A stretch of DNA of 63,415 nucleotides, taken from contig NW_005434538.1 of assembly GCF_000315625.1 (NCBI RefSeq), forward strand, positions 47,855 to 111,269, read 5' to 3'. Each line of letters starts with the position of its first letter. The first letter of the stretch is position 1. Source of the DNA: Guillardia theta CCMP2712. Its lineage: Eukaryota > Protista > Cryptophyta. The translations under genes and the position numbers were made by a program. Positions 18,651 through 54,780 of this stretch are shown here, in pieces. The notes under the pieces are model-generated. The model saw nothing but the letters and a program-made list of their open reading frames with translations. It was not told the DNA's origin and made no database searches.

Positions 18651-23535
<4,885 letters not shown>

Positions 23536-32740: not shown

Positions 32741-33402
32741 GAGACTAGGCTACTAGTCTGGATCGATGGGCCAGCCAGCCTCGTCAACGGCGCAAGATTT
32801 CGTGATAGGTTTGGATCTTTCGACAGCGCTAAGAAATCTACTGATCTTTCATTGACTGAAAATCGAAATGCAAACCGGAGCAAACAAGGAGGAAAAGGAG
32901 AAACCCTACAAATCCGCCTCAAGAAAAACACCAGGAAACGGAGGAGGCAGCAAAACCGCTACTCCAACCACGCAAGCGACGGCAAGAGATCACTTCTTAC
33001 TGAGGCGGGTTGTTACAAGTCCTTGGAGCCTCTTGGTACAAATGTTTTGAGGGGGTTATGTTGTTAGAGAGGTATTCGAGATATGCTGACATCTGACGGC
33101 TACAACCCCACCCCCACCCACTACCTGGGGGCAAAGGTTTTTAGGGAGGTAGTGGGGTGGACTTTCGTTTCGAAACAGGGTGGTGCAGAGGGGCCGTAAA
33201 CTGCTCGTGAATCTCTACTCGCGTCCAGATGCAAGTGAGGGGAAGTGGCGAGGAGGGAGGAAGCGAGGATGGGAGATAAACGCAGAAAAGAAATAGCGGA
33301 CAAACAAGAAGGAAATCTGAGCACTAATGAGGAGTCACGTGTTGCGTGTCTCGAGTGAGAGTTGATACAAGTAAAACTGCTTGCAGGTGACAGGCATTGA
33401 GA

Positions 33403-35448
33403 ATGAAGCTACTTTCTCGCACGATTGCGAAACTCTTCCTTTTAGGATTTTTGGTCTTGCTGCCATCAGTCCAAGCTCATGACCATGATGATCATGATCA
33501 TGACCATGATGATCATGATCATGATGACCATGATCATGACGAGCTGTGGCACGGACACGTTGAGTTAGGTAAACAAACCTACACATTGAATCTGCAACGA
33601 CCAGCAGCAGGAGAGGTATGCTGCTTCTAGACTCTTCATGTCCTCATGCCCATGTTTGACATATCTCTTCGTAGGACTACGTCGACACTTCTCTCAAGAT
33701 TGCCATCGTCAATCCTGCGGACGTGAAAAAAGCGAACGTGACATCAGATGCGCTGAAGTCAGCGATCCACGCCAAGTTTGATACTGAATTGAAGAGGTTT
33801 GAGCAAGGATCTGTGGTTGGCATGGGGTCCACAGACACATCATCTACGTTGCTGACCTCGATCCCTGTTGACTTGTTCGTGTTGGTTCCTGACCGGGATG
33901 CTTCCAACACTGTGATCAAGTTGTCCGTACCCAACGCAACCACGTACGGGATTTTCGCAAACCATCCCTTGTCCGAGTGGGAGGGGGCTTTGAAGTTCAT
34001 GATGGATAGCCGTTCAAATGAGGTCCTCCTTGAAGGGTCGACGACCTGTCAATCGTCCTTGTCTTCCTCTGCCGTGTGGGGACTGTCGATCTTGGGAGCG
34101 TTTATCGGAGCAGCCATGTCGCTTTCCGGTGTGCTGATTATCGTCCCTGTGCTCAAGATGGAGGAGCTGTGGATTCTCAAGTACCTCAACTGCCTGGCTG
34201 CTGGCGTGCTGCTCAGCTTTGTTCTCATCCATCTCATCCCCGAAGCTGGCCATCTGCATGGTGACGTGCACGAGGAGGCTGATGAAAACCTTGACTCGCC
34301 GTACTGCAGGCAGTTTAAGCTGGGAGGTCAGCACAACCGTGTTGGCTGGATTCTTTGCTGGTAAGCTTCACTTTGAGGTGCCGACCTTGCAATGATTGAT
34401 CATCAAGGGCTTCTGGTCGAGCATGGTATACACCTCTACTTCACTGCCTTCGGGAAGGAGCCGGTGACCGCCGCTTGTTATTTGATCCACCACGGTCGTC
34501 CTGATCGAGTCCCCAGGCAAGGATTGAAGGTGGGACCGGGACATCGCCTAGGAAAGGAGAGCTGGTCTTTGTCGATCAAGAAGCTCAAGATCACATGGCG
34601 CTGAGCAGTCAGAAAGCGCTGGACGGTGACGCTGTGCAAGACAAGCCAGTCGCATGGGGAAGGATCGGAAACATCCTGCTCGGAGATTTCTTCCACAACT
34701 TCTTCGATGGGGTATCAACGGCGATTGCTTTCAAGTACTGCGGCTCTGGTTTGCCAGCTGCAGCCCTCACGTTGAGCACGCGGTAATGGATGTCGTCAGG
34801 ACTAGGATGGGTTGTCGTTGGAGCAGCCGTCGCTCACGAGCTTCCGCAAGAGCTGGGCGACTTTGTAGTGCTGTACAACTCTGGCATGTCCGTCTTCCTT
34901 TGAAGTCACCTTGAGGGAGCAGTCTCACGTCATGCGCAGGTCCATCAAATGGGCTCTGATCAGCAACTTTCTCTCTTCGCTCTCGGCCTGTCTGGGGGTA
35001 CCCTGCTGTGGTGCTGAGGCTTCTCGGGGGTCTGACGGCAGCACCAGAGCATCGTCATCCTTGCCGCCACGGAGAGTGCTCATGAGAATATCAACCAAGA
35101 CATGGGTATATGTCTCGCGTTCGCAGCAGGGATCCTCCTCTACATCGCATCAGGTACAGCAACCTTGTTGTACGTCTTGTGCTTTGACATCTCTGACAAT
35201 CTCCTTGCGACATTGAAGGCCTTGTACTGGACATGGTCAAAGTGGACGATGTGCGATCAGCTATGACATGCTGGCTGGTATGTGCTCGCATGAGCAAGAC
35301 GACTAGTGTGCAACACGGACTGACACGCTGGGTGGGCCAGATGTTTATCGTCGGGGCGGTTGCGCTTGGGCTGACAGCCCTCAATCATATCCACTGCGAA
35401 TGCTTCGGAGATCATTCGGGTCATGAGCATCACGGTCACGCTCACTGA
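33403..35448 (+). CDS. ZIP (SLC39, LIV-1-type) zinc/metal transporter, copy 1
   Basis: Signal peptide, (HDHDD)n ectodomain, CLAAGVLLSFVLIHLIPEA, GDFFHNFFDG (TM4), AHELPQELGDF (TM5), FAAGILLYIA, His-rich C-terminus; several short GT-AG introns. Confidence 0.92.
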
Positions 35449-35803
35449 TGGAGGAGGGTGGCGGACGCGGAGCCTCATGACCATCTGCTTGGCTGTGCTC
35501 CCACAAGCCTCTTGCAACGGCCGAAGACGCTGATCAATCACGACTGTCTGTCTGCCTATGGAAGATCTGCAAGTGCAAGCTGGCATCCCCGGCTGTGAAG
35601 CAATAGTGAGTGCGTGTGTTTATGTGTGTGCGTGTGTGTAGAGTAAGCCTCCTAGTCTTTATTCTTGTAATACAAGAATCAGGAGCCATGACTTCCATCC
35701 AGCATCTTACGTTGAGAGCCTCTTGGTACAGATGTTTTAGTTATCAAAGGGGCTCTAGCACATTCGAAGGTGGCAGAGGGGGTTATATGTTTTAGAGGGA
35801 GAG

Positions 35804-35955
35804 GGCTCACGCGAAATTACTATTGTAACCTTCTACATGATTGTACTTACAATACGTTGGAACCAACTCGGTATGTATCTGGTCTCGGATCAATTTAAGG
35901 ACTGCGCCCTACAAGACTGAGCCTGCCTCAGAACAAGCAGTACGCCGCAAAAAAA
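35804..35955 (+). mobile_element. ~150-bp insertion ending in A7 and flanked by GAGAG direct repeats (SINE-like or truncated retro-copy); present upstream of ZIP copies 2-4, absent upstream of copy 1
   Basis: GAGAG(35799-35803)-GGCTCACGCG...CCGCAAAAAAA-GAGAG(35956-35960). The copy 1 equivalent at ~33067 reads GTTAGAGAGGTATTCGAG with no insert. Confidence 0.45.
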
Positions 35956-36291
35956 GAGAGATACTCGAGATATGCTGACATCTGACGGCTACAACCCCAC
36001 CCCCACCCACTAGCTGGGGGCAAAGGTTTTTAGGGAGGTAGTGGGGTAGACTTTCGTTTCGAAACAGGGTGGTGCAGAGGGGCCGTAAACTGCTCGTGAA
36101 TCTCTACTCGCGTCCAGATCCAAGTGAGGGGAAGTGGCGAGGAGGGAGGAAGCGAGGATGGGAGATAAACGCAGAAAAGAAATAGCGGACAAACAAGAAG
36201 GAAATCTGAGCACTAATGAGGAGTCACGTGTTGCGTGTCTCGAGTGAGAGTTGATACAAGTAAAACTGCTTGCAGGTGACAGGCATTGAGA

Positions 36292-38316
36292 ATGAAGCTA
36301 CTTTCTCGCACGATTGCGAAACTCTTCCTTTTAGGATTTTTGGTCTTGCTGCCATCAGTCCAAGCTCATGACCATGATGATCATGATCATGATGATCATG
36401 ATCATGACGAGCTGTGGCACGGACACGTTGAGTTAGGTAAACAAACCTACACATTGAATCTGCAACGACCAGCAGCAGGAGAGGTATGCTGCTTCTAGAC
36501 TCTTCATGTCCTCATGCCCATGTTTGACATATCTCTTCGTAGGACTACGTCGACACTTCTCTCAAGATTGCCATCGTCAATCCTGCGGACGTGAAAAAAG
36601 CGAACGTGACATCAGATGCGCTGAAGTCAGCGATCCACGCCAAGTTTGATACTGATTTGAAGAGGTTTGAGCAAGGATCTGTGGTTGGCATGGGGTCCAC
36701 AGACACATCATCTACGTTGCTGACCTCGATCCCTGTTGACTTGTTCGTGTTGGTTCCTGACCGGGATGCTTCCAACACTGTGATCAAGTTATTAGTACCC
36801 AACGCAACCACGTACGGGATTTTCGCAAACCATCCCTTGTCCGAGTGGGAGGGGGCTTTGAAGTTCATGATGGATAGCCGTTCAAATGAGGTCCTCCTTG
36901 AAGGGTCGACGACCTGTCAATCGTCCTTGTCTTCCTCTGCCGTGTGGGGACTGTCGATCTTGGGAGCGTTTATCGGAGCAGCCATGTCGCTTTCCGGTGT
37001 GCTGATTATCGTCCCTGTGCTCAAGATGGAGGAGCTGTGGATTCTCAAGTACCTCAACTGCCTGGCTGCTGGCGTGCTGCTCAGCTTTGTTCTCATCCAT
37101 CTCATCCCCGAAGCTGGCCATCTGCATGGTGACGTGCACGAGGAGGCTGATGAAAACCTTGACTCGCCGTACTGCAGGCAGCTTAAGCTGGGAGGTCAGC
37201 ACAACCGTGTTGGCTGGATTCTTTGCTGGTAAGCTTCACTTTGAGGTGCCGACCTTGCAATGATTGATCATCAAGGGCTTCTGGTCGAGCATGGTATACA
37301 CCTCTACTTCACTGCCTACGGGAAGGAGCCGGTGACCGCCGCTTGTTATTTGATCCACCACGGTCGTCCTGATCGAGTCCCCAGGCAAGGATTGAAGGTG
37401 GGACCGGGACATCGCCTAGGAAAGGAGAGCTGGTCTTTGTCGATCAAGAAGCTCAAGATCACATGGCGCTGAGCAGTCAGAAAGCGCTGGACGGTGACGC
37501 TGTGCAAGACAAGCCAGTCGCATGGGGAAGGATCGGAAACATCCTGCTCGGAGATTTCTTCCACAACTTCTTCGATGGGGTATCAACGGCGATTGCTTTC
37601 AAGTACTGCGGCTCTGGTTTGCCAGCTGCAGCCCTCACGTTGAGCACGCGATAATGGATGTCGTCAGGACTAGGATGGGTTGTAGTTGGAGCAGCCGTCG
37701 CTCACGAGCTTCCGCAAGAGCTGGGCGACTTTGTAGTGCTGTACAACTCTGGCATGTCCGTCTTCCTTTGAAGTCACCTTGAGGGAGCAGTCTCACGTCA
37801 TGCGCAGGTCCATCAAATGGGCTCTGATCAGCAACTTTCTCTCTTCGCTCTCGGCCTGTCTGGGGGTACCCTGCTGTGGTGCTGAGGCTTCTCGGGGGTC
37901 TGACGGCAGCACCAGAGCATCGTCATCCTTGCCGCCACGGAGAGTGCTCATGAGAATATCAACCAAGACATGGGTATATGTCTCGCGTTCGCAGCAGGGA
38001 TCCTCCTCTACATCGCATCAGGTACAGCAACCTTGTTGTACGTCTTGTGCTTTGACATCTCTGACAATCTCCTTGCGACATTGAAGGCCTTGTACTGGAC
38101 ATGGTCAAAGTGGACGATGTGCGATCAGCTATGACATGCTGGCTGGTATGTGCTCGCATGAGCAAGACGACTAGTGTGCAACACGGACTGACACGCTGGG
38201 TGGGCCAGATGTTTATCGTCGGGGCGGTTGCGCTTGGGCTGACAGCCCTCAATCATATCCACTGCGAATGCTTCGGAGATCATTCGGGTCATGAGCATCA
38301 CGGTCACGCTCACTGA
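36292..38316 (+). CDS. ZIP metal transporter, copy 2 (His/Asp tract 7 aa shorter)
   Basis: Near-identical to copy 1; first-exon ORF is 70 aa versus 77 aa. Confidence 0.92.
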
Positions 38317-38912
38317 TGGAGGAGGGTGGCGGACGCGGAGCCTCATGACCATCTGCTTGGCTGTGCTCCCACAAGCCTCTTGCAACGGCCGAAGACGCTG
38401 ATCAATCACGACTGTCTGTCTGCCTATGGAAGATCTGCAAGTGCAAGCTGGCATCCCCGGCTGTGAAGCAATAGTGAGTGCGTGTGTTTATGTGTGTGCG
38501 TGTGTGTAGAGTAAGCCTCCTAGTCTTTATTCGTGTAATACAAGAATCAGGAGCCATGACTTCCATCCAGCATCTTACGTTGAGAGCCTCTTGGTACAGA
38601 TGTTTTAGTTATCAAAGGGGCTCTAGCACATTCGAAGGTGGCAGAGGGGGTTATATGTTTTAGAGGGAGAGGGCTCACGCGAAATTACTATTGTAACCTT
38701 CTACATGATTGTACTTACAATACGTTGGAACCAATATCCACGAACAAAGGAATACAAAAAGACTCTACGATAAGATTCCAAGGACAGCCGAGTTTAAGGG
38801 CTCTTGGTCTTTGTGCGTCGAATTGACAACGAGTTTGAAGGCTCTTTAAGTTATACTGTACGCTGTTACTCATTTTTTTTGGAACGGTATTGGTAACTCC
38901 AAGTTGACGATC

Positions 38913-40262
38913 ATGAGCATGCCAGATCTGCAAGAGGAGTTGAAACGAAGCCATGGTGATGTTCAGGTCGACAAGCTGAAGCATGGGAAGGTTACCTCCA
39001 AGGAAAAACTCGAGGACCTGTTCCTTCCTTTCTCAGGTGCCATGAGTCGTTTTCGTCCGAATCTTGGGGCTTGTTTCTTAAAACTGTTGGACTTGTTTCC
39101 GATTGACGAGACTGGATCGTTTGTTGGAGAATTTCATGAAATGTGGGAGTCGTCTCCAGAAGGTCTAGAAAAATTCTCTTCGCTGGAGTGGAAGATTCAG
39201 GTCACGGCGTTGTTTCTGCATGCTGGGTACATTTGGAAGAATGGGAAGAAATTCAAGGATGCTCTTGAGAAGTTTAAGAAGTTGCGAGGAAAATTCGAGG
39301 AGGCAATCGCAGCCAGCGAGGATGTGAATGATGGTGCTTCAGAGGATGGAGAGATGGGTAATCCACTCGATACATCTGTGGTTTTCTCTCCACACAAGTA
39401 CCAAATATCACCGAGGTTGTTCAGATCCTCAGCTGATCGACAGGAGGTGGAAGTCTTATTTGAGGATATTGCTGAGGTACTTGTCAGCACGAACAGTTAT
39501 TTTCGAGTTAAGCTAAAGGATGATTTCGACATAGAGTGGCAGATGTCAGGAGGAGGCAACTATCCTTTGGCATTCTTCAAAACTTTGGCACTGGTACGCT
39601 GGAATGTAAAGCAACGAAGTGGAGCTGAGCTTATCGAGCTTACTGAGGACGAAGGGAGAGATCAGCTCAGAGCGCTAGCGAAACAGCCACTTGAGTCTGA
39701 AGAAGCCTTCTGGAGGAACGTGGACAAAATCAAGCTACTGTTTAAGAATCTCAAGGATAGTATTCAAGGTGTTGTGGGGGCACACCAAAGGATGGGGCCG
39801 TTAGAGATCCAGATCGCTGAACTCTTGCATGCCAGGTGTAAAGAATCGACTTGTGAATCGTTGCAGTCATTGGCATTGAATAGAGAATTGCGAAATTGGA
39901 AGAAGAGTAATATGAGACCAGAAAAGATTTCTCTCGACGAAATATTCCACTGGGGGCGCATCTTAAAAACTAGAAGCAAGACGACTACGACCGTGACGCC
40001 CGCGATGGATGCGAAGGGAGACGTGTCAGTGGTGAATATCACTGTGGCAAGTGAACCGTTGGTACCGAATGAACCGCAGGCTGTCGGAGAAGTTGCAGTG
40101 GGCAAGAAGAGATCCTCGGGGTCAGGCGAAAATAGTGGTCAAGCGGATTCGGGAGAGAATTCTCACGTCGATCCCAAATGGTATGGTAATTACCCAGTTC
40201 GTGGGAGTATACCTCCATCATATCCCCAAGGTATCATGTTTCCCAGCCAAGACCCGTTTTTT
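38913..40262 (+). CDS. Gag-like protein (N-terminal part), continuing into the pol frame by a +1 shift at a T6 run
   Basis: Long intronless, helical-looking ORF upstream of and overlapping pol. The Pro/Gln/Tyr-rich composition continues across the frame switch at CCG TTT TTT CAA (40254-40265). Confidence 0.7.
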
Positions 40263-43200
40263 CAATTTCTATGCTCAAGGTCAACCCTCTTTGTATCCAT
40301 TTCCTATCCAAGGTCCGGTCGGGAACGTCCCAACGTTTTACCAGGCTTCTGGTCAAGCTCCTTCAGGACCTGGTAGGACGGGACAAGATCAGGCGGCGTT
40401 TGACCCTAGCTCATACCGTGGTGGTTTCCCTGGCCGCGGAGGCGAGGGGGACGGCGGACCTAACCATACGGGTTACCGTGGCAGGGGAAGGCGGAATCAG
40501 GATGGGTACCATAATGGAGGGAGAGGAAGTTTTAAAGGAGGCTATGGAAGAGGTCAGGGTGGACAGAAAGGACATGGAGGCAAAGGTTGGAAGGGTGGTC
40601 GAGGTCATGGAAATTTCAATCACAACCACAACTACAATAACAACAACTACAATCAAAATAATGGCAACTACAAAAATCAGCGGTTTAACCCTCGAGGGGT
40701 TGAAAGTGAACAACCGTCATCTGTCTTGCAGAATTTGTTGTCAGGGGGAGTTGTGGACGCTGAAACCACGCGCAAGATGGGGGAAGCGTTGATTCAGGCA
40801 GCTCAACGCATGGCAGCGAATGCTTCTTCAAGTTCACACAGTCACCAGCAGAAGGCTGACGCAGACGGCCAGCGGAATGAGTCAGAAAAGAAATCTTCTG
40901 TTCCTGCAAATCCATTTGAACGCTCATCGGCCCAGAATGCAACGGAATCTGCATCACAGGCTAATCGACGGCAAGGAGCGTGGAAAGCAAATTTCACATT
41001 TGGTCTCGATTCCACGTCTACCATCGAGGAATTGCAGGAAATTGCATTGCAGGTAAAGGAGAAAGAAGGAGCTGGAGGCCATACGTTCTTGCTGGACTCT
41101 GGTGCTAATATCTCCATGGTCAAGGAAGAGTCTATGTTGTTTGATGTCCAAGCTGGACCTGAATTTCAGGTGCTTACCGCTGGAGGTACTGTCGTCTGTG
41201 ATAAGGTTGGAAAATTACGACTGCAACTGGTTTGTCCAACAACTAACACCTGTCTGGACGAGATTATTGTCAACGTTCGCGTATGCCCGCTTGTCCCGAT
41301 ATCGTTGCTTAGCTTGGATGATGTTCTTGGGACTGACTACCACATGTTATCACGGGGCTCCAGGAGTGCCCTAAAGTCTTACATTTGCTCAGAAGATGGT
41401 GCATTGAAAATCGATGTATTCCAACGAGATAGGTTGTACTTTTTGCAGACGGTTCTCATGGGAGATGGGAAGATTAGTGTGGCGTGCAACAGTACAACCT
41501 CTTGCGCTGATACGAGCAATGGTGATAATTACAGTGGGGGTCCATCAAGTTTAGTGACTCTCAAGCCAGAGGAGAACATGTGTGAGCAGTCCCGATTGTC
41601 AGCTGCGACAGAATCGGCCATCTGGCACCTTCGGCTCGGACATCTGGAAGCAAAGATTCAAAAATTACTAGCCGATTCGGTGAAGTATATCACGTACGAC
41701 AGGCGCCTAAAGAAATCTCCTTGTCACACCTGTAGAATAGCAAAGTTCGTCTCACGGCCGATCCATCGACAGTCGGATTTCCGACAGGAGCGGGCATCAG
41801 AGGTCAATCAAGTCTGGCATATGGATTTGAAAGACATAATTGTACAATCCGAGCCTGGTGGTTATAGATATTTCTTGATCATTGTGGACGTCTTTTCGGG
41901 ATTTGTGCGAGTAAGACCTATGCGCACGAAGAGTCAGACGACTGCTATCCTCAAGGAAATACTGTTACAAGAGGATCGTGACAGCTCTCGTCCTAAGGTA
42001 CAGAAGATTGTATCTGACAACGGTTCAGAATTCAGCTCTGTGGAGCTGGAGAGCTTTTTCGTTGATCATGGGATACGACATGACAAAATTCCAGAGTACT
42101 CTCAGGTCTACAATGCGTTCGCTGAACGTGGAATCAGAAGCGTAATGTCCATTCATCGGACGTTACTACGTCAGAGCGGAGTACCCCGGAGCAAATGGGA
42201 ATATTCCGTACAGCAGGCAGTTTTACTGTACAACATTCTGCCTAGTGGACGAAATCTAGGGTATTCCTCACCATACTTGATATATACAACCGAGCAGTTT
42301 GACTATCGCAAGCTCAAGGTTTTTGGGTGCAGCACCTTCTTCAAGAATGAACTACGCACGTCAAAGGTGGATGATCCAGCAATTCATGGTTTAAATCTGG
42401 GAAACGCGTGCGCTTTCTCTGGATATAAGGTGGGGTATTTGGTTTGGGATATCGAGCATGATAGAATCGTCCATACGAATAATCTTACGTTTGACGAGAT
42501 GTATTTTCCATTACGTTGCCGACGTTTTCAGGCATCTAATGTGGAGGATGAATTGTTGAAGGAACTAGTACCTTGTGCACCAGTGGCATCTGACGACGAC
42601 GAAGACTCCTCGGAAAATGCGAGTGAAACAGAATTGCAAATTCCTGAGGAAGTTGCAACGTCTGGCAGGAAGCGACACTGTCAGGGAGGCTCTGGTCCTG
42701 ACGCAAGTGAAGTTTCCGCGAGCAAGCGCCTCCAATTGGAATTTCCACCTTCCTCGGTCCAAGGCCTGACATCTGGAGATCAACGGGAGGATACAGGAGA
42801 GCATCGGTTGAGGGATGATACCGAATATGTGCCTGACGGTGCAATGTCTCCAGTTCCTCCAGCAGGCAGAAGAACACGGAGGGATTTCAAGGCGGAGCGA
42901 GGGGTCTTGGAAAGCAAATATGTCAATCGAGATGTCGAAGTTCTTGTAAATGGTCAAGTAGAGCAAGGCAAAATTTTGCAGATGGTTTTCAAGGAGGGAA
43001 AGTTTCTCGCGCGGATTGTTTTCCCAACTCTCGACAATTACTGGGTGTTACGGTCTGTCACTGATCCTGACATCAAGTTTTTGGAACAAACCGAACAGAA
43101 GGCAATGGTGGTGCTTAGAAGTGGGGAGACAATATCAGAGGTCTGCATGTTAGCAGATTATTACTCGTGCAGCTTTCCACCGAACGTCTTTGGTGATATG

Positions 43201-45339
43201 ACCGACCATACCAAAGTTTTTAAACCCTGTCTTGATCGTGCAGCGGATGAGATCATGGATGTTGTCGAAGCTACAGTTGGGGGTTCGCCTGAAGTGGTTG
43301 TACTTTCCCAGCACAAGCAATTTTCGCAGTATCTGCAAGTTACACATATTGTGCAGGGGTCGACTGAATCTGAAGAGATCTTGTATGTTTGGGACAGGGG
43401 GGAAGACAGGACAAGCCTTCAGCCAGCATCCCAGCGTTTTGTTCCAGTATGGAGGGATGAGATGTACAAAACTCGTTTACAGCATGTCGATCCTGTGTCA
43501 TCTGCCCCACAGGTCAGTGCTAATGTGGACCCTACTTTCAGGGATACGCGTCTTCTTGTGGCGAATCTAGCGTTGGTCTCTCCCGTATGGGACGCGGTGG
43601 AGCTGGCGTCTGACCTGTTATCTCTGATGTCTTCCGACCGTGACAATCCAGCTGCAATGCCTGAGAATCAGGCAGATTACGCGATGACAGCGGCTTGCGA
43701 TGCAGGAGATGTGGAGAACGAAAGTAGTTTTGACAAGTTACCAGATCCCAAGACAAGGTCAGAGATGTTACGTCGTCCGGATCGGCATCTTTGGGAGCAG
43801 GCTGAAAAGGAGGAAATTGCGAAGATCGAAAGTCGTGGGGTCTGGGAAGTTGTTACGCGTGATCAGAAAAACAGGGAGTCAAATCATTCTGTACTTGCTC
43901 GCGCCTTGTGGGTGTATGCTTCAAAACGAGACTTGAAGGGCAAGATCTTGAAACGAAAGGGGCGGCTAGTTATCATGGGCAACTTACTTCCTTCATCTGA
44001 AGAATTGTTTGCACCGACTACATCGTTGGACAATATCCGGCTCTTGCTGAGCATCGCGGCAGGCAACCGTTGGAGAATCACATTCAGGGATATCTCTGCT
44101 GCTTTCTTGTATGGTGACTTGGAGGTTCCTGTGTATTTGATTCCTCCAGATATCATGAGTCTTCCTCCTGAGTGCCTCCTCAAAGTCTTGAAGTCGCTCT
44201 ATGGACTTCGCATTGCACCAAGGAGATGGTATCTTAAGTTCACGCAGGTGTTGAAGACGGTGGGAGCAAGTGGGATAGGACATGATGAGATCATCTACCG
44301 ATACTCCAACTGTGCGGGGGACGTCTTGCTTCTGACTGTCTTCGTGGATGACTTACTCATTGTCTCTCAAACTGAAGCAATTAAGATTGAGTTTCTTGAG
44401 AAGCTCAACACAGTATTCGACTTTTCGGGGAGTGAGGCAACAGGTACCTTCTTGGGCATTAAAATAGAACAGAATGACGATCAGGGTCGGATAACTTTGT
44501 CACAACAGCATTTCATTGAAAAGATTGTTGAACGCTTTGAAATCGTTGCCAGAGGTGTCAAAACGGTATTACCTGGTCACTATCTCAAGACTTATCACTT
44601 GGAGGGTAAGTTGTTGAACAAGAAGGAAGTCCGCACTTATCTGAGTCTTCTGGGGTCCATTCTCTACGTGGCAAATTGTACGCGGGTTGATATCGCATTC
44701 GCGACGAGCGTCCTTAGTCGCTTTGCTCGGGCTCCTAGGCAGTGCGATATGGATGCCTTAATTCATCTTCTACAGTACCTTTACACTACTCGGGAGGTTC
44801 AGATCGTATACCATTGTCACGGAGTATCTTACCACCAGGAGTGTTTTGTCAATGAGATGATTGCATTCAGTGATGCTGGTTGGGGTACCGAGATTATTAC
44901 GAGACGGAGTCAAAGCGGATATGGAATCGTTCTGAATGGTGGGGTAGTCGTCTTCGGTTCAAAAATGCAGAAGGTTGTTGCCCTGAGTTCTTCAGAAGCT
45001 GAAATTTATGCTGCCACCACATGCGCGAAACTAGTCAAGCTTTATAGAAATCTCTTGGGTCAGATGGGATTTACGCAGACTCGTCCTACTCTCTTGCTGA
45101 TCGACAATGAACCATGTCTGAGGCTTTTGTGGGACAAGCGAAGTTATAGTCGACTCAAACACATTGATATTCGAACGAAGTATGCTGTTGATTTGGTAGA
45201 AAAGGACGAGCTCTATCCAGAAAAGATTCATACTTCTTATCAGCCTGGTGATTTGCTGACGAAAGTTCTGCCTTTGAATCGGTGGAGGCTCCTTGGTGAA
45301 TTTCTCTTCGGAGACCCCTTACCGGATATGCTGCTCTGA
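40263..45339 (+). CDS. pol: Gag C-terminus + Pol polyprotein (aspartic protease, integrase, reverse transcriptase, RNase H)
   Basis: FLLDSGAN (PR); WHLRLGH...CHTC (HHCC); WHMD, SDNGSE, NAFAER (DDE); RDISAAFLYG, LKSLYGLR, FVDDLL (RT); AFSDAGW, SSSEAE, IDN, KHIDIR (RNase H). No internal stops. Confidence 0.97.
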
Positions 45340-47891
45340 GGATGCTCGCCTGTCATGCTCTCTGCGCTTCTGTCAGGGACAGTGCTACTCTGTTCCCATG
45401 CCGTCAGTCGCCAAAGTTGTATGCCCCGTGTGTGATTGACGGTGATCCGAGCTCCAGTCTCCGACAGGGAGATTCAACCGATCCTGCTGCGGTGGCTTCC
45501 AGGCTTTATCTTCCGTCTTTTCTCCGATTCAGGGAGGGTGTCTCGGACCCTTGCCACCGAGTCCGTGTCGCTCGAGAATTGTCAGTCTTCCGTCTTCTAT
45601 CCGATTCAGGGAGGGTGTCTCGGGTGATGTCACCGAGGAGACTCTCATGGAGAACGTGAAGGAATCGGATGAATCGGAAGGAGGATAAAGACAGACACGT
45701 CTTCCTCAAGCCTGTGGCTAGCTGCAACCAAGACATCTGTTCTAGGTTAGTATCTTAGAAACTCGCTCATCCTGATCTATGGAACCCATGACGGTAGTGA
45801 ACGATGAAATTGAATGGCCAAAAATGAAAATTGAGAAAGAAATGACGGATGAGTCGAGATCGATAAGTCATGTGGTTGAAATGAAAGCGCTGACGTCAAA
45901 AATGATTGTGCCTTGGCAAAACAATGATCCCCGGGGTAGATAGGATAGAAAGGGCCCATAGATTAGAAACGAGAAAATTGTGTTCAAAACAATCAGAGAT
46001 CAATCAATGCATTGCAAGAATTCTGAACCTGATCTCTGGAGCTTGATTGGAATCCAAAATTCTTGGCATCATCAATGGGTGGAGATGTCTTCATTGCTCA
46101 ATGCGCAAGCTTCAGAGAGGTCACATGATGACCAATCCCATCATGACGATCAGGTTGAAGAGGAGGAGGAGCTGTCTGACTTGAAAGATGCAGATGTGTT
46201 CAGGACTTAGTCTTGAACTGACACTGCAGGCAGCTGGGAAGAGTTTATGATGGAAGGTGAGGAGGAGCACAGGTGCATGCGGACAGCGCAGGCGGATGAG
46301 GAGAGTCTCTAGTGGCATGCGGATGGTACAAGCTGAGGAACCCGAGTGCACGAGCATCAGGATGCGCTAGAGGAGGACAGCGCAGGTGCTGCAGGAGTGC
46401 TGCTGAAGCGCAAGCGCTGGAGGAGCAGCGCAGGCCCCGCAATGGTGGGGAGCAGCCGCAGCGCAGGTGGAGGAGCAGCGCAGGTGCTGCAGGAGTGCTG
46501 CTGAAGCGCAAGCGCTGGAGGAGCAGCGCAGGCCCCGCAATGGTGGGGAGAAGCCGCAGCGCAAGCGGAGGAGCAGCACAGGTGCACTGTTGGCGGGGTG
46601 CGACCGCACTGCATCCGCAGCGCAAGCGGAGGAGGAGCGCAGGTGTCACAGGAGGAGAAACGCAGGTGCACCAGGGTGCACACTTGAACCGAAGGAGGAG
46701 CGCAGGAGGCATGCAAGATGGGGGATGAGCCTGTGCAGAACGGTTGATGGAGTGGTAGCAGCAAGATGACCTTGGAGAGGAGAGCAGCATGGAAGTCAGC
46801 TTGGGAAAGATGTTGATGGTCAGGTGATGGAAGCAGCTGACAACGCTGCAAGAAGCTAGAGCGATCGTTGGAAAGGAGGACATCGCAGGGGACAGCTGCT
46901 TAGCTGTCAAGCAGATGATTTTGACAAGCTGAGAAGGTTGCAGACTTCTGACTTGCTTCCCAAAGGGAGGGTGTAAGAACTCAGGTTCTGACAAACCTCT
47001 CAGAAGTTCTTTCAGACGCGATAAGTTCAAGGGATGCGTCTAATCAGGTTGTGAACCAAGTGAAGCCTGCAGGTCCAAGCTAGTGGGCTGGAGCTTAGTC
47101 TGTGACTTAGAAGATCCGGTTGGTTGGAGCCTGGGGAAGCTGAGGCGGCGCCGGAGGAATCAAGAGGCACCGGCGGTCGAAGAGGCAGCACTCGTACAGT
47201 GGTGGAAGTAAGGCGGTGGTGTGTGAAGGGAAGCTGTTTGGTTGGTCTTGCTGCTACGAGTGTTGGGAATAAAGTGCTGGGGATTGTTGGGAAGTTGATC
47301 TGAGTTATCTGAGGTGTTTGGTTGGCTGTGAAAGTCATTGGTGTCTTCGTGCGCACATCATCTGTGAGTCTTGGTCTTTGGACTTATCAGTCAGCTGTTG
47401 AGCTGTTCTACTAGTCATTCATCTGTGCACAGACTCTAGGAGTCAGGAATTGATTCCAATACCAACTCGGTATGTATCTGGTCTCGGATCAATTTAAGGA
47501 CTGCGCCCTACAAGACTGAGCCTGCCTCAGAACAAGCAGTACGCCGCAAAAAAAGAGAGATACTCGAGATATGCTGACATCTGACGGCTACAACCCCACC
47601 CCCACCCACTACCTGGGGGCAAAGGTTTTTAGGGAGGTAGTGGGGTGGACTTTCGTTTCGAAACAGGGGTGGTGCAGAGGGGCCGTAAACTGCTCGTGAA
47701 TCTCTACTCGCGTCCAGATCCAAGTGAGGGGAAGTGGCGAGGAGGGAGGAAGCGAGGATGGGAGATAAACGCAGAAAAGAAATAGCGGACAAACAAGAAG
47801 GAAATCTGAGCACTAATGAGGAGTCACGTGTTGCGTGTCTCGAGTGAGAGTTGATACAAGTAAAACTGCTTGCAGGTGACAGGCATTGAGA

Positions 47892-50020
47892 ATGAAGCTA
47901 CTTTCTCGCACGATTGCGAAACTCTTCCTTTTAGGATTTTTGGTCTTGCTGCCATCAGTCCAAGCTCATGACCATGATGATCATGATCATGACCATGATG
48001 ATCATGATCATGATGACCATGATCATGACGAACTGTGGCACGGACACGTTGAGTTAGGTAAACAAACCTACACATTGAATCTGCAACGACCAGCAGCAGG
48101 AGAGGTATGCTGCTTCTAGACTCTTCATGTCCTCATGCCCATGTTTGACATATCTCTTCGTAGGACTACGTCGACACTTCTCTCAAGATTGCCATCGTCA
48201 ATCCTGCGGACGTGAAAAAAGCGAACGTGACATCAGATGCACTGAAGTCAGCGATCCACGCCAAGTTTGATACTGAATTGAAGAGGTATGAGCAAGGATC
48301 TGTGGTTGGCATGGGGTCCACAGACACATCATCTACGTTGCTGACCTCGATCCCTGTTGACTTGTTCGTGTTGGTTCCTGACCGGGATGCTTCCAACACT
48401 GTGATCAAGTTGTCCGTACCGAAGGCAACTACGTACGGGATTTTCGCAAACCATCCCTTGTCCGAGTGGGAGGGGGCTTTGAAGTTCATGATGGATAGCC
48501 GTTCAAATGAGGTCCTCCTTGAAGGGTCGACGACCTGTCAATCGTCCTTGTCTTCCTCGCCGTGTGGGGACTGTCGATCTTGGGAGCGTTTATCGGAGCA
48601 GCCATGTCGCTTTCCGGTGTGCTGATTATCGTCCCTGTGCTCAAGATGGAGGAGCTGTGGATTCTCAAGTACCTCAACTGCCTGGCTGCTGGCGTGCTGC
48701 TCAGCTTTGTTCTCATCCATCTCATCCCCGAAGCTGGCCATCTGCATGGTGACGTGCACGAGGAGGCTGATGAAAACCTTGACTCGCCGTACTGCAGGCA
48801 GTTTAAGCTGGGAGGTCAGCACAACCGTGTTGGCTGGATTCTTTGCTGGTAAGCTTCACTTTGAGGTGCCGACCTTGCAATGATTGATTATCAAGGGCTT
48901 CTGGTCGAGCATGGTATACACCTCTACTTCACTGCCTACGGGAAGGAGCCGGTGACCGCCGCTTGTTATTTGATCCACCACGGTCGTCCTGATCGAGTCC
49001 CCAGGCAAGGATTGAAGGTGGGACCGGGACATCGCCTAGGAAAGGAGAGCTGGTCTTTGTCGATCAAGAAGCTCAAGATCACATGGCGCTGAGCAGTCAG
49101 AAAGCGCTGGACGGTGACGCTGTGCAAGACAAGCCAGTCGCANNNNNNNNNNNNNNNNNNNNNNNNNNNNNNNNNNNNNNNNNNNNNNNNNNNNNNNNNN
49201 NNNNNNNNNNNNNNNNNNNNNNNNNNNNNNNNNNNNNNNNNNACATCCTGCTCGGAGATTTCTCGCACACGTTCTTCGATGGGGTATCAACGGCGATTGC
49301 TTTCAAGTACTGCGGCTCTGGTTTGCCAGCTGCAGCCCTCACGTTGAGCACGCGGTAATGGATGTCGTCAGGACTAGGATGGGTTGTAGTTGGAGCAGCC
49401 GTCGCTCACGAGCTTCCGCAAGAGCTGGGCGACTTTGTAGTGCTGTACAACTCTGGCATGTCCGTCTTCCTTTGAAGTCACCTTGAGGGAGCAGTCTCAC
49501 GTCATGCGCAGGTCCATCAAATGGGCTCTGATCAGCAACTTTCTCTCTTCGCTCTCGGCCTGTCTGGGGGTACCCTGCTGTGGTGCTGAGGCTTCTCGGG
49601 GGTCTGACGGCAGCACCAGAGCATCGTCATCCTTGCCGCCACGGAGAGTGCTCATGAGAATATCAACCAAGACATGGGTATATGTCTCGCGTTCGCAGCA
49701 GGGATCCTCCTCTACATCGCATCAGGTACAGCAACCTTGTTGTACGTCTTGTGCTTTGACATCTCTGACAATCTCCTTGCGACATTGAAGGCCTTGTACT
49801 GGACATAGTCAAAGTGGACGATGTGCGATCAGCTATGACATGCTGGCTGGTATGTGCTCGCATGAGCAAGACGACTAGTGTGCAACACGGACTGACACGC
49901 TGGGTGGGCCAGATGTTTATCGTCGGGGCGGTTGCGCTTGGGCTGACAGCCCTCAATCATATCCACTGCGAATGCTTCGGAGATCATTCGGGTCATGAGC
50001 ATCACGGTCACGCTCACTGA
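47892..50020 (+). pseudogene. ZIP metal transporter, copy 3; 1-bp deletion frameshift (or sequencing error) and N gap
   Basis: TCTTCCTCGCCG at ~48551-48562 versus TCTTCCTCTGCCG in the other copies splits the 213-aa exon ORF. Also ATG>ATA at ~49807 and an altered HNFFDG next to the gap. Confidence 0.65.
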
Positions 50021-50858
50021 TGGAGGAGGGTGGCGGACGCGGAGCCTCATGACCATCTGCTTGGCTGTGCTCCCACAAGCCTCTTGCAACGGCCGAAGAC
50101 GCTGATCAATCACGACCGTCTGTCTCCCTATGGAAGATCTGCAAGTGCAAGCTGGCATCCCCGGCTGTGAAGCAATAGTGAGTGCGTGTGTTTATGTGTG
50201 TGCGTGTGTGTAGAGTAAGCCTCCTAGTCTTTTTTCTTGTAATGCAAGAATCAGGAGCCATGACTTCCATCCTTACGTTGAGAGCCTCTTGGTACAGATG
50301 TTTTAGTTATCAAAGGGACTCTAGCACATTCGAAGGTGGCAGAGGGGGTTATATGTTTTAGAGGGAGAGGGCTCACGCGAAATTACTATTGTAACCTTCT
50401 ACATGATTGTACTTACAATACGTTGGAACCAACTCGGTATGTATCTGGTCTCGGATCAATTTAAGGACTGCGCCCTACAAGACTGAGCCTGCCTCAGAAC
50501 AAGCAGTACGCCGCAAAAAAAGAGAGATACTCGAGATATGCTGACATCTGACGGCTACAACCCCACCCCCACCCACTACCTGGGGGCAAAGGTTTTTAAG
50601 GGAGGTGGTGGGGTGGACTTTCGTTTCGAAACAGGGGTGGTGCAGAGGGGCCGTAAACTGCTCGTGAATCTCTACTCGCGTCCAGATCCAAGTGAGGGGA
50701 AGTGGCGAGGAGGGAGGAAGCGAGGATGGGAGATAGACGCAGAAAAGAAATAGCGGACAAACAAGAAGGAATCTGAGCACTAATGAGGAGTCACGTGTTG
50801 CGTGTCTCGAGTGAGAGTTGATACAAGTAAAACTGCTTGCAGGTGACAGGCATTGAGA

Positions 50859-52904
50859 ATGAAGCTACTTTCTCGCACGATTGCGAAACTCTTCCTTTTA
50901 GGATTTTTGGTCTTGCTGCCATCAGTCCAAGCTCATGACCATGATGATCATGATCATGACCATGATGATCATGATCATGATGACCATGATCATGACGAGC
51001 TGTGGCACGGACACGTTGAGTTAGGTAAACAAACCTACACATTGAATCTGCAACGACCAGCAGCAGGAGAGGTATGCTGCTTCTAGACTCTTCATGTCCT
51101 CATGCCCCTGTTTGACATATCTCTTCGTAGGACTACGTCGACACTTCTCTCAAGATTGCCATCGTCAATCCTGCGGACGTGAAAAAAGCGAACGTGACAT
51201 CAGATGCACTGAAGTCAGCGATCCACGCCAAGTTTGATACTGAATTGAAGAGGTATGAGCAAGGATCTGTGGTTGGCATGGGGTCCACAGACACATCATC
51301 TACGTTGCTGACCTCGATCCCTGTTGACTTGTTCGTGTTGGTTCCTGACCGGGATGCTTCCAACACTGTGATCAAGTTGTCCGTACCGAAGGCAACTACG
51401 TACGGGATTTTCGCAAACCATCCCTTGTCCGAGTGGGAGGGGGCTTTGAAGTTCATGATGGATAGCCGTTCAAATGAGGTCCTCCTTGAAGGGTCGACGA
51501 CCTGTCAATCGTCCTTGTCTTCCTCTGCCGTGTGGGGACTGTCGATCTTGGGAGCGTTTATCGGAGCAGCCATGTCGCTTTCCGGTGTGCTGATTATCGT
51601 CCCTGTGCTCAAGATGGAGGAGCTGTGGATTCTCAAGTACCTCAACTGCCTGGCTGCTGGCGTGCTGCTCAGCTTTGTTCTCATCCATCTCATCCCCGAA
51701 GCTGGCCATCTGCATGGTGACGTGCACGAGGAGGCTGATGAAAACCTTGACTCGCCGTACTGCAGGCAGTTTAAGCTGGGAGGTCAGCACAACCGTGTTG
51801 GCTGGATTCTTTGCTGGTAAGCTTCACTTTGAGGTGCCGACCTTGCAATGATTGATTATCAAGGGCTTCTGGTCGAGCATGGTATACACCTCTACTTCAC
51901 TACCTACGGGAAGGAGCCGGTGACCGCCGCTTGTTATTTGATCATCCACGGTCGTCCTGATCGAGTCCCCAGGCAAGGATTGAAGGTGGGACCGGGACAT
52001 CGCCTAGGAAAGGAGAGCTGGTCTTTGTCGATCAAGAAGCTCAAGATCACATGGCGCTGAGCAGTCAGAAAGCGCTGGACGGTGACGCTGTGCAAGACAA
52101 GCCAGTCGCATGGGGAAGGATCGGAAACATCCTGCTCGGAGATTTCTTCCACAACTTCTTCGATGGGGTATCAACGGCGATTGCTTTCAAGTACTGCGGC
52201 TCTGGTTTGCCAGCTGCAGCCCTCACGTTGAGCACGCGGTAATGGATGTCGTCAGGACTAGGATGGGTTGTCGTTGGAGCGGCCGTCGCTCACGAGCTTC
52301 CGCAAGAGCTGGGCGACTTTGTAGTGCTGTACAACTCTGGCATGTCCGTCTTCCTTTGAAGTCACCTTGAGGGAGCAGTCTCACGTCATGCGCAGGTCCA
52401 TCAAATGGGCTCTGATCAGCAACTTTCTCTCTTCGCTCTCGGCCTGTCTGGGGGTACCCTGCTGTGGTGCTGAGGCTTCTCGGGGGTCTGACGGCAGCAC
52501 CAGAGCATCGTCATCCTTGCCGCCACGGAGAGTGCTCATGAGAATATCAACCAAGACATGGGTATATGTCTCGCGTTCGCAGCAGGGATCCTCCTCTACA
52601 TCGCATCAGGTACAGCAACCTTGTTGTACGTCTTGTGCTTTGACATCTCTGACAATCTCCTTGCGACATTGAAGGCCTTGTACTGGACATGGTCAAAGTG
52701 GACGATGTGCGATCAGCTATGACATGCTGGCTGGTATGTGCTCGCATGAGCAAGACGACTAGTGTGCAACACGGACTGACACGCTGGGTGGGCCAGATGT
52801 TTATCGTCGGGGCGGTTGCGCTTGGGCTGACAGCCCTCAATCATATCCACTGCGAATGCTTCGGAGATCATTCGGGTCATGAGCATCACGGTCACGCTCA
52901 CTGA
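50859..52904 (+). CDS. ZIP metal transporter, copy 4
   Basis: Intact and near-identical to copy 1. Confidence 0.92.
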
Positions 52905-53643
52905 TGGAGGAGGGTGGCGGACGCGGAGCCTCATGACCATCTGCTTGGCTGTGCTCCCACAAGCCTCTTGCAACGGCCGAAGACGCTGATCAATCACGAC
53001 CGTCTGTCTCCCTATGGAAGATCTGCAAGTGCAAGCTGGCATCCCCGGCTGTGAAGCAATAGTGAGTGCGTGTGTTTATGTGTGCGCGTGTGTGTAGAGT
53101 AAGCCTCCTAGTCTTTATTCTTGTAATATAAGAATCAGGAGCCATGACTACCATCCAGCATCTTACATTGTAGCAACTCACGACTTGAAGCATTACTTGT
53201 AACTCTCTGGCCCACAAACCACCTCTGTCAGTTCATTTTGCATACAAACAGGCCTTAACGGTTACTCAGGCTACCTGTGGAGGGCCTCTTTATTAGTAAG
53301 AACTCTTCAATCGCAAGAAATAGGGTACTTATTCTGAACTAGTTGCATGTTCCTAGCTCAGTCCTTCGTGTTCCTGTTCCGAGGTTTTTCGTCTTGGCAA
53401 ACTGAAGGACAGCAGCAGTCTTCAGGATACTCTAAAAGATTCGGCGCAAGAGAATGGACAAGTGGAAGAGGAAAACCTCACGGCCAAGAGGAGGAGGAGG
53501 ATCTTGTTCATACGCTGAGGCCTTGTATTGATATCATTCAATGCAAGCTTAGCTCCTCTGTCCTCTCAAGCGTCTCATCATCAAATCATGCTCCTCCTTC
53601 CCTCCACCCCTTCCGCCTCCCTTCTTGTTACTCTCTACTGGCT

Positions 53644-54780
53644 TCATACCCCTTCCTCCTCCAGTCCCATCCCCATGTACCACTCGATCCACCCTGCCTC
53701 AAGCCCCTCCCACAACCCTTCCCCCTCCGTGTCCCCCTGCCCCACCCACCCCCCTTCTCGTGCCCCTCCCTCCAACCCCTCCGCCTCCTCGAGCCCTACC
53801 TCCCACTCTCCTTCATACTCCTCCTCCCTCTCATCGCCCGCCTGCACAGCCCTCTCCCCTCCCCCTGACGCTGTTGGGACGGGAGGACCCGGCAGCGATG
53901 GCGCGCTGGCGGCGCTGACAGCGACGGGCTCGGTCTCCCTCCTCCTCCTCGCGTACGGCCATCGCCCTAGCCCCAGTGACCGGCAAGCGTTCTTGAGGGC
54001 CGACAGCGAGATCCCCTGCGCTCGCCCGTCACATGGAGGGGGAAGGGGGGGGGGGGGGGGGTGTGCAGGGGGGGGGTGAGAGGTANNNNNNNNNNNNNNN
54101 NNNNNNNNNNNNNNNNNNNNNNNNNNNNNNNNNNNNNNNNNNNNNNNNNNNNNNNNNNNNNNNNNNNNNNNNNNNNNNNNNNNNNTTGTCATGCTCTTGT
54201 ACATGTCCTGCAATCACCGACTCGATTGCAATCGTTGCACCCAAGTCAAAAAGGATTTCACAGCTCTACCCCTGTCTCTCATAGCTCGGCGACTTTGACT
54301 AGAGATCAAGAGATCTTTGTCCTCTTTCTGCAAGCTCCCAGCATACAAAGAAAGCCATATCGACCAGCATACAAACAAAGCCATATTCACAGATTCTCAG
54401 GTGCACATGTGTCAAGTTTTAAGCCTCCGCCTCCCCCATCTCCACGTCTCCCGGGCTCACAGGAGGCAAAGGCAGAGGGCTAGTACCAGAAAGAGCCATC
54501 TGCTCTAGCTGATCATCATCGTCATCCAAGTTCGCCTTCATCTCCTCGGCAAGGTGCAGCAACAACAGCATCTGCTTCTTTGGGGTAGAGGGGAGGGGGA
54601 GGTCGCTTACCAGATGACGGGCAGCGTGAGTTTGGGAGAGGTGGGTGAGGGAGCGGAGGAGGTCGAGGGTGAGTCTGCGGAAAGAAGGGGAGGGTCCGGG
54701 GGATGGAGAACCATCGAGTGTCTTCTTGATCCTGGGGTACACGATACGGACGGTTTTGACGGGAGGGGGAAGGGAAGGGA
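53644..54780 (-). CDS. RWP-RK domain transcription factor (5' end unresolved; intron spans an N gap)
   Basis: TVRIVYPRIKK...LTLDLLRSLTHLSQTHAARHL| (donor 54610) joins in frame to acceptor 54016 |GISLSALKNACRSLGLGRWPYARRR, followed by an acidic tail. Confidence 0.82.

Follow-up and report, generated by a model that had tools for sequence, protein, structure and literature searches.

Introduction

Ty1/Copia retrotransposons (Pseudoviridae) encode Gag, protease, integrase and an RVT_2-type reverse transcriptase in that order, and are expected to carry paired long terminal repeats (LTRs) with TG...CA termini. We analysed an element with this gene order in the cryptophyte Guillardia theta CCMP2712, lying in a stretch of 63,415 nucleotides (contig NW_005434538.1, positions 47,855 to 111,269, forward strand), which at its full length is called the window here and to which all coordinates refer unless another contig is named. 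An earlier note, made from the letters of this stretch alone, had presented it as a Copia element with an intact pol and a precise target-site duplication but no LTRs, and had considered an LTR-less lineage with a different mechanism of strand transfer. Comparison with the other copies in the genome gives a more ordinary picture: the window element is almost certainly a single copy, young and defective, from an ordinary Ty1/Copia family with two LTRs; it has a polypurine tract and a complete 3' LTR but without the 5' LTR and the 22-nucleotide (nt) palindrome core. The family is like Ty1/Copia in its domain order, its 490-bp LTRs, its polypurine tract and its 5-bp target duplications, and unlike it in its termini, which are TG...TA and not TG...CA; the window copy has a 3' LTR alone in place of the pair, which makes it a defective copy and not a different lineage.

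For the primer region a parallel is offered by the fungal GalEa Copia elements, whose 'Conserved Hairpin Site' forms a palindrome once the last A of the 5' LTR is counted in, and works by a mechanism that its describers call unknown (Donnart et al. 2017, PMC5445492). For the truncated end the parallels come from retroviruses, in which aberrant second-strand transfer leads to proviruses with incomplete 5' LTRs (PMC12657518), and in which host enzymes can finish an insertion that integrase has made at one end only, in many cases with short homology and a duplication that is not canonical (PMC5041404). Self-primed elements of the Tf1 type, which prime from their own RNA after a nick in an RNA duplex adjoining U5, provide a possible analogy only. 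The element is unlike LINE, Penelope and DIRS elements in having a DDE integrase and sister copies with LTRs, and in lacking poly(A).

A defective copy in a two-LTR family

The decisive comparison was a search of the first and last 500 bp of the element against the genome of Guillardia theta itself. The last 490 bp recur at many genomic loci and form a complete LTR, preceded by a polypurine tract:

46962-46971, forward strand: polypurine tract AAAGGGAGGG, found directly upstream of every 3' LTR in the family
46972-47461, forward strand: complete 3' LTR of 490 bp, TGTAAG...CCAATA, matching the LTRs of the copies C30, C1, C10 and C137

Against both LTRs of each of these four copies the window LTR shows 2-4 mismatches over 489 aligned bases, and within the four the paired LTRs are 99.4-100% identical to each other. 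The absence of LTRs reported for this element was thus an oversight, made because the 5' partner of the repeat is absent. Self-comparison of the window copy found no terminal direct or inverted repeat inside it, and its two ends have neither a TG...CA pair nor poly(A), as the earlier note had observed.

The 5' side of the family completes this picture. In eleven other genomic copies, at 96-99% identity, the base that matches the window copy's first is directly preceded by 22 bp and, before these, by an LTR, and compared with these 11 other 5' ends only the window copy has the leader without a preceding LTR. Wherever the two flanks of a copy could be matched to each other, a 5-bp duplication lies directly outside TGTAAG and CCAATA (GTTAA, CCGCC, AGGCT, CGTGA, TGATC and GTATC, with TTAGC for a solo LTR). 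The earlier note had asked whether other copies share the same non-repeated termini; in the genome the LTR and the 22 bp stand before all 11 of the other 5' ends, so none does. It had also allowed that the element might turn out to be a one-off rearrangement of a normal two-LTR family, and this is what the genomic copies indicate. A genuine Copia lineage that replicates without terminal repeats is accordingly refuted: it has in its favour the absent 5' repeat of one copy and nothing more, and it is contradicted by the complete 3' LTR and polypurine tract, by the eleven sister copies with paired 490-bp LTRs and 5-bp duplications, and by a left end that is common to no other copy. Nor does the integration of a one-LTR circle opened inside the LTR, which had also been suggested, agree with the ends, since the right one is a normal LTR end and the left one lies 22 bp outside the LTR.

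The first 2 kb of the window copy hold 2 private differences in comparison with nine other copies (~0.1%), and the copy is collinear with C60 across its whole internal length. By these 2 changes and the 2-4 LTR mismatches to other copies, the window copy is very young, and the youth claimed for the insertion is borne out.

The insertion site and its duplication

The insert spans 38735-47461 (alternatively 38735-47460) and sits within one unit of a 2.87-kb tandem array, the period of which is ~2868 bp. BLAST maps the flanks of the insert to sister units at 98-99.6% identity, and in BLAST and exact-pattern searches the 18 bases at 38717-38734 and the 20 bases at 47462-47481 are contiguous in two of these units; the empty units at 35849-35882 and 50415-50448 both read GGAACCAACTCGG. 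Since the flanks are contiguous in two empty sister units, the insertion is real, as had been claimed. The target site and its two copies are the following:

35863-35867, and a second at 50429-50433: empty target site in a sister array unit (BLAST and exact-pattern searches)
38731-38734: left target copy, CCAA, or ACCAA with 38730 included (comparison with sister units)
47462-47466: right target copy, CCAAC by the family rule, with CCAA at 47462-47465 (junction reading)

With the whole LTR left to the element, the duplication has 4 bp, CCAA; the 5-bp reading, ACCAA, requires that base 47461, the last of the LTR, be counted with the target. Both readings, given in the earlier note as a precise duplication, agree with the junctions; neither is the CCAAC predicted by the family rule, the final C of which is absent from the left target copy. 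CCAATA stands at both junctions, as the LTR has, just before its terminal TA, the same CCAA as the target. On the right the junction takes the canonical form, CCAATA and then the target.

A second family insertion is apparently found in a CCAAC target (5' flank of C228, 3' flank of C60), with flanks that differ from those in the window. The shared target may reflect target preference or chance, the latter being about 13% for some pair among ~17 sites.

At least five 2.87-kb units, nearly identical to one another, make up the array (window 33000-38734 and 47462-53200), which is incompletely assembled, as the 100-N scaffold gaps at 49143-49242 and 54086-54185 show. These gaps could speak for an assembly artefact, in which the left junction is a false join in a poorly resolved tandem array. 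We consider this very improbable, as the element and both junctions lie inside 27 kb of gap-free sequence (21848-49142, between the nearest 100-N gaps at 21748-21847 and 49143-49242), both junctions fall in one target site with a 4-5-bp duplication such as a chimeric join would not leave, and the 24-mer across the left junction occurs once in the genome. Each unit of the array contains a reading frame resembling ZIP zinc transporters (Pfam PF02535, E = 1.6e-9) with a His/Asp-rich microsatellite of the ATCATG type.

The palindrome at the primer site and the left edge

What the window copy lacks on its left side becomes clear from the full-length copies, in which the LTR end CCAATA is followed by CAAAAAGAAAATTTTCTTTTTG and then by TATCC (C30) or TATTC (most copies). 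This 22-nt core, together with the last 3-4 bases of the LTR, forms a perfect palindrome of 28-30 nt that extends from -2/-3 to +25/+26. All 11 other copies keep the core, one of them with two substitutions and none with a deletion. The predicted fold has a 12-bp stem in a 112-nt context, with z = -3.8 for the whole 112-nt fold. In contrast to Ty1/Copia, no tRNA-complementary primer-binding site was seen next to the 5' LTR of the full-length copies, where the palindrome stands instead, although the tRNA set of the genome was not scanned.

Two sister families, with 63% and 48% reverse transcriptase (RT) identity, have different palindromes in the equivalent place. These start exactly with the last LTR base and extend from 0 to +23 and from 0 to +22, and a compensatory A:T to G:C change separates one of them from the palindrome of the window's family. 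The extents in the three families imply that the last LTR base has +23 as its pairing partner. Elsewhere in the genome, on contigs 46 and 29, more remote Copia families (31-33% RT identity) have a conventional primer site of the copia type, a complement of the anticodon loop of the initiator tRNA (GGTTATGAGCC, GGTTATAAAAGCC), and the palindrome is thus confined to one clade.

The likeness to the GalEa elements lies in the absence of a tRNA primer site and in a palindrome whose first base is the terminal A of the 5' LTR, both of which are found in the window's family and in the two sister families. It extends to the pairing of the last LTR base with the base just past the core, and to a second related motif a few tens of bases downstream. 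Unlike in GalEa, the palindrome measures 23-30 nt and not 10 nt, the host is a cryptophyte, and the window copy itself is without the palindrome. The RT motifs KGRLVI and FVDD are not an exact match to either known set, the fungal one being KSRLVI with QTDD and the metazoan one KARLVA with YVDD. On these sequence features the window's family resembles the hairpin-site Copia elements of fungi, with which it may functionally belong.

The window copy starts within the palindromic region, with a leader that has two features of note:

38735-38912, forward strand: 5' leader, the first base of which is +23 relative to the 5' LTR of full-length copies
38751-38762, forward strand: 12-mer AATACAAAAAGA, a direct copy (sequence reading)

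The left end is therefore the pairing partner of the last LTR base, and the left edge is a mirror image of the usual right end: here the bottom strand closes with ...GGATA-3', and the genuine right end reads ...CCAATA-3'. Missing on this side are 512 bp, namely the whole 5' LTR and the 22-nt core. The ~178 bp that remain between the element start and the gag ATG at 38913 (~180 bp in the earlier note) have no copy in the 2.1 kb after pol, exactly as reported before.

In full-length copies AATACAAAAAGA straddles the LTR end and the upstream arm of the palindrome, which would make it a competing pairing partner for the downstream arm. A further 12-mer, TCTTGGTCTTTG, occurs in the leader (38803-38814) and in the U5 part of the LTR (47370-47381), and its copies are placed roughly symmetrically about the primer palindrome in full-length elements. 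This shared word, noticed before at ~38802 and ~47369, does exist; it is only marginally above chance, as 6 of 300 shuffles of the 3' region reached a shared word of this length.

Some variation of the palindrome was seen elsewhere in the genome. The copy on contig 137 has identical LTRs, yet two palindrome substitutions (core CAAAAAGAAATTTTTTTTTTTG), which may stem from copying of the primer region. On contig 16 (~205060-205100) a diverged copy of the 63% family carries a CTTCGG insertion within the upstream arm. Contig 44 (239500-240800, minus strand) contains a short element in which a diverged LTR end is succeeded by the palindrome of the 48% family and by 158 nt of leader. Only ~230 bp further on there is a polypurine-like tract (TCAGGGAGGG), and the element may be a non-autonomous derivative. 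We had tried this match as an LTR-less start at the mirror position and rejected it, as it has a diverged LTR end and no truncation.

Origin of the truncated left end

Any account of the window copy has to explain three facts jointly: the canonical right end and junction, the left end at +23, and the left target copy that reads CCAA and not CCAAC, with CCAATA at both junctions. We favour an origin in which the copy was inserted already without its 5' LTR, through an aberrant cDNA or an aberrant integration, and would give it a probability of roughly 0.5. The aberrant cDNA that the earlier note listed among its explanations is thus still the leading one, though short of proof.

In such an origin, reverse transcription would stop short of the second (plus-strand) transfer, the step that builds the 5' LTR. 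The DNA to be integrated would then end at +23 on the left, where its bottom strand has the same ...ATA-3' end as at the genuine right end. This left end could arise by run-off on an RNA that had been nicked between +22 and +23 for fold-back self-priming, by trimming of a palindromic 3' tail at the junction between ATA and CAAAAAG, as on the right, or by bypass of the folded hairpin. The normal right end would be joined by integrase, and the left end either by integrase, through its look-alike ATA-3' end, or by host repair; in the latter variant, synthesis would be primed from the nicked target after a four-base fill-in, by way of the 4-nt CCAA match to the LTR end. Either joining route would yield a 4- or 5-bp duplication in place of the canonical CCAAC.

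The aberrant retroviral proviruses (PMC5041404, PMC12657518) are similar in that one end and its junction are normal and the other end is truncated with short homology, the 5' LTR being incomplete and the duplication non-canonical. Judged as an aberrant one-ended integration, the window copy has a canonical right end, a left end truncated by 512 bp, a 4-nt CCAA match and a 4-bp duplication, a product that later deletions could give as well. Host-mediated retroviral events usually leave larger duplications, deletions or rearrangements, whereas the duplication here is within one base of canonical; and, unlike in those proviruses, the truncation point coincides with a structural landmark.

In a more specific form of the favoured origin, the left end would be a fossil of priming. 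A nick in the RNA between +22 and +23, inside the duplex that the palindrome forms, would leave a 3' OH at +22; with +22 paired to +1, this end would prime the minus strand exactly at the last LTR base, and the copy would be the run-off product that never underwent the second transfer. We regard this form as unlikely. It also departs from the Tf1 analogy: there the first 11 nt of the RNA pair with a primer site that is not palindromic, and here the partner, as predicted from sequence, would be immediately adjacent, in a fold-back or a dimer.

Several points weigh against an insertion in truncated form. The duplication deviates from the invariant 5-bp type of the family, the right copy being CCAAC and the left one, CCAA, a base shorter. 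The target shares its CCAA with the LTR, which has these four bases before its terminal TA; this is a coincidence of ~1 in 256 if the copy was born by concerted integration, and a microhomology deletion explains it directly; the second family insertion in a CCAAC target weakens this argument from coincidence, as the match may partly be target preference. In addition, TA flanks the core on both sides, so that a symmetric 24-nt hairpin deletion would give the same left junction, and the mirror position is not unique evidence. Finally, the two sister families gave no second start at the mirror position, in ~12 5' ends for the 63% family and 8 for the 48% family.

In a different history, a normal two-LTR insertion with a CCAAC duplication would later have lost its 5' LTR, in two steps or in one compound repair event. 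One deletion, of 490 bp, would have joined the CCAA of the left target to that of the LTR end, and 24 nt of the palindrome would have been excised between TA repeats. Such deletions would explain the left CCAATA and the missing C of the left target without any coincidence. Perfect palindromes are prone to symmetric excision, many family copies have deletions with 0-13 nt of junction homology, and the tandem array holds abundant templates for the repair of double-strand breaks. This history nevertheless calls for a pair of rare events at the same end of an element that otherwise shows no deletion and 2 private changes in 2 kb, and in so young a copy there has been little time for two deletions to arise independently. 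The 22-nt core is kept, with no deletion there, in all 11 other copies, and neither an intermediate nor a full-length allele of the same insertion site is present in the assembly. We therefore hold later deletion to be possible, with a chance of about one in three, and less probable than insertion in truncated form.

The deletions just mentioned are a general trait of the family: internal deletions on the kb scale are common among copies that retain the 5' LTR, the 3' LTR or both, with 0-13 nt of homology at their junctions. Their frequency is compatible with template-switch errors in reverse transcription, though they may also stem from genomic deletion. Two independent deletions of this kind, in the copies on contigs 309 and 228, have breakpoints that lie within 3 bp of each other (window ~42866-42868, element position 4132-4134), and this near-coincidence may mark a hot spot of template switching or breakage.

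Simpler histories were considered and set aside. A single simple deletion of 512 bp was rejected, as it has no junction microhomology and both of its breakpoints would lie on landmarks by chance. An element start at +24, by way of a C-to-T change in the left copy of the target, is unlikely given the private divergence of ~0.1%. Two further family members that are truncated on the 5' side, C93 and C2, show no target duplication that matches and are not comparable events.

The palindrome also permits a reading in which the truncation is the work of integrase; it comes near the opened circle of the earlier note, except that the opening falls at the palindrome and outside the LTR. A circular (one-LTR) or full-length DNA would be cut at the LTR end and at the mirror site on the other strand, 22 bp away, and the recessed 3' ends would then be inserted in a concerted reaction. 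Retroviral integrases have been reported to cleave palindromic LTR-LTR junctions; in the window's family the palindrome makes both sites read ATA followed by CAAAAAG on their own strand, and the product would run exactly from +23 through the LTR end. A concerted reaction should, however, leave the 5-bp duplication of the family, which is not seen cleanly, and only 3 nt (ATA) match the genuine LTR end in this lineage. As the reading also relies on a putative endonucleolytic 3' processing by the family's integrase, we consider this variant of an insertion in truncated form improbable.

Coding capacity of the element

The internal part of the window copy contains the following features:

38913-40376, forward strand: gag frame, 487 aa from the ATG, which ends early in the window copy; no Pfam match
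39477-39534, forward strand: intron-like GT...AG segment of 58 nt in gag, precisely absent from C1 (copy comparison)
40051-45339, forward strand: pol frame, 1762 aa, open (Pfam and motifs)
40257-40262, forward strand: run of six T, against five in nine other aligned copies, C30 included (alignment)
45340-46961, forward strand: non-coding 3' region, with a 98-bp tandem repeat at 46364-46585 and a 38-nt direct repeat at 45509-45546 and 45586-45623

The pol frame has Pfam matches to gag_pre-integrs (aa 512-565) and rve (583-681), which cover the zinc finger and core of the integrase, to an SH3-like domain (749-820) and to RVT_2 (1285-1500), and the motifs DSG of the protease at aa 349, FVDD at aa 1431 and KGRLVI. 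The order of protease, integrase and RVT_2 reverse transcriptase is that of Copia. Pol had been called intact, and its frame from protease to RT is indeed open over 1762 aa; the extra T at 40257-40262, one of the two differences private to the window copy, puts it in the +1 frame relative to gag, from which it is thus split. In C30 and C10 there is one continuous frame, of 2164 and 2179 aa.

The 58 nt of the intron-like segment are not a multiple of three, and its removal shifts the gag frame. The copy C1 (contig 1, ~1214060), in which the segment is precisely absent, may descend from a spliced RNA. An antisense open reading frame at 46245-47030 had no Pfam match.

Implications

A Copia lineage replicating without LTRs is refuted, and there is no novel biology in the finding as it was first framed. 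The locus is instead a clean natural case of the insertion of a one-LTR retrotransposon with a near-canonical duplication, and such products, familiar from aberrant integration in retroviruses, have rarely been documented together with the empty site. The position of the left end alone cannot separate fold-back priming from hairpin excision. If the palindrome serves fold-back self-priming, the truncation edge is the predicted nick site, which provides an exact coordinate that can be tested. Should the left end indeed prove to be a fossil of priming, it would be the first positional evidence for the start of reverse transcription in GalEa-like 'Conserved Hairpin Site' elements.

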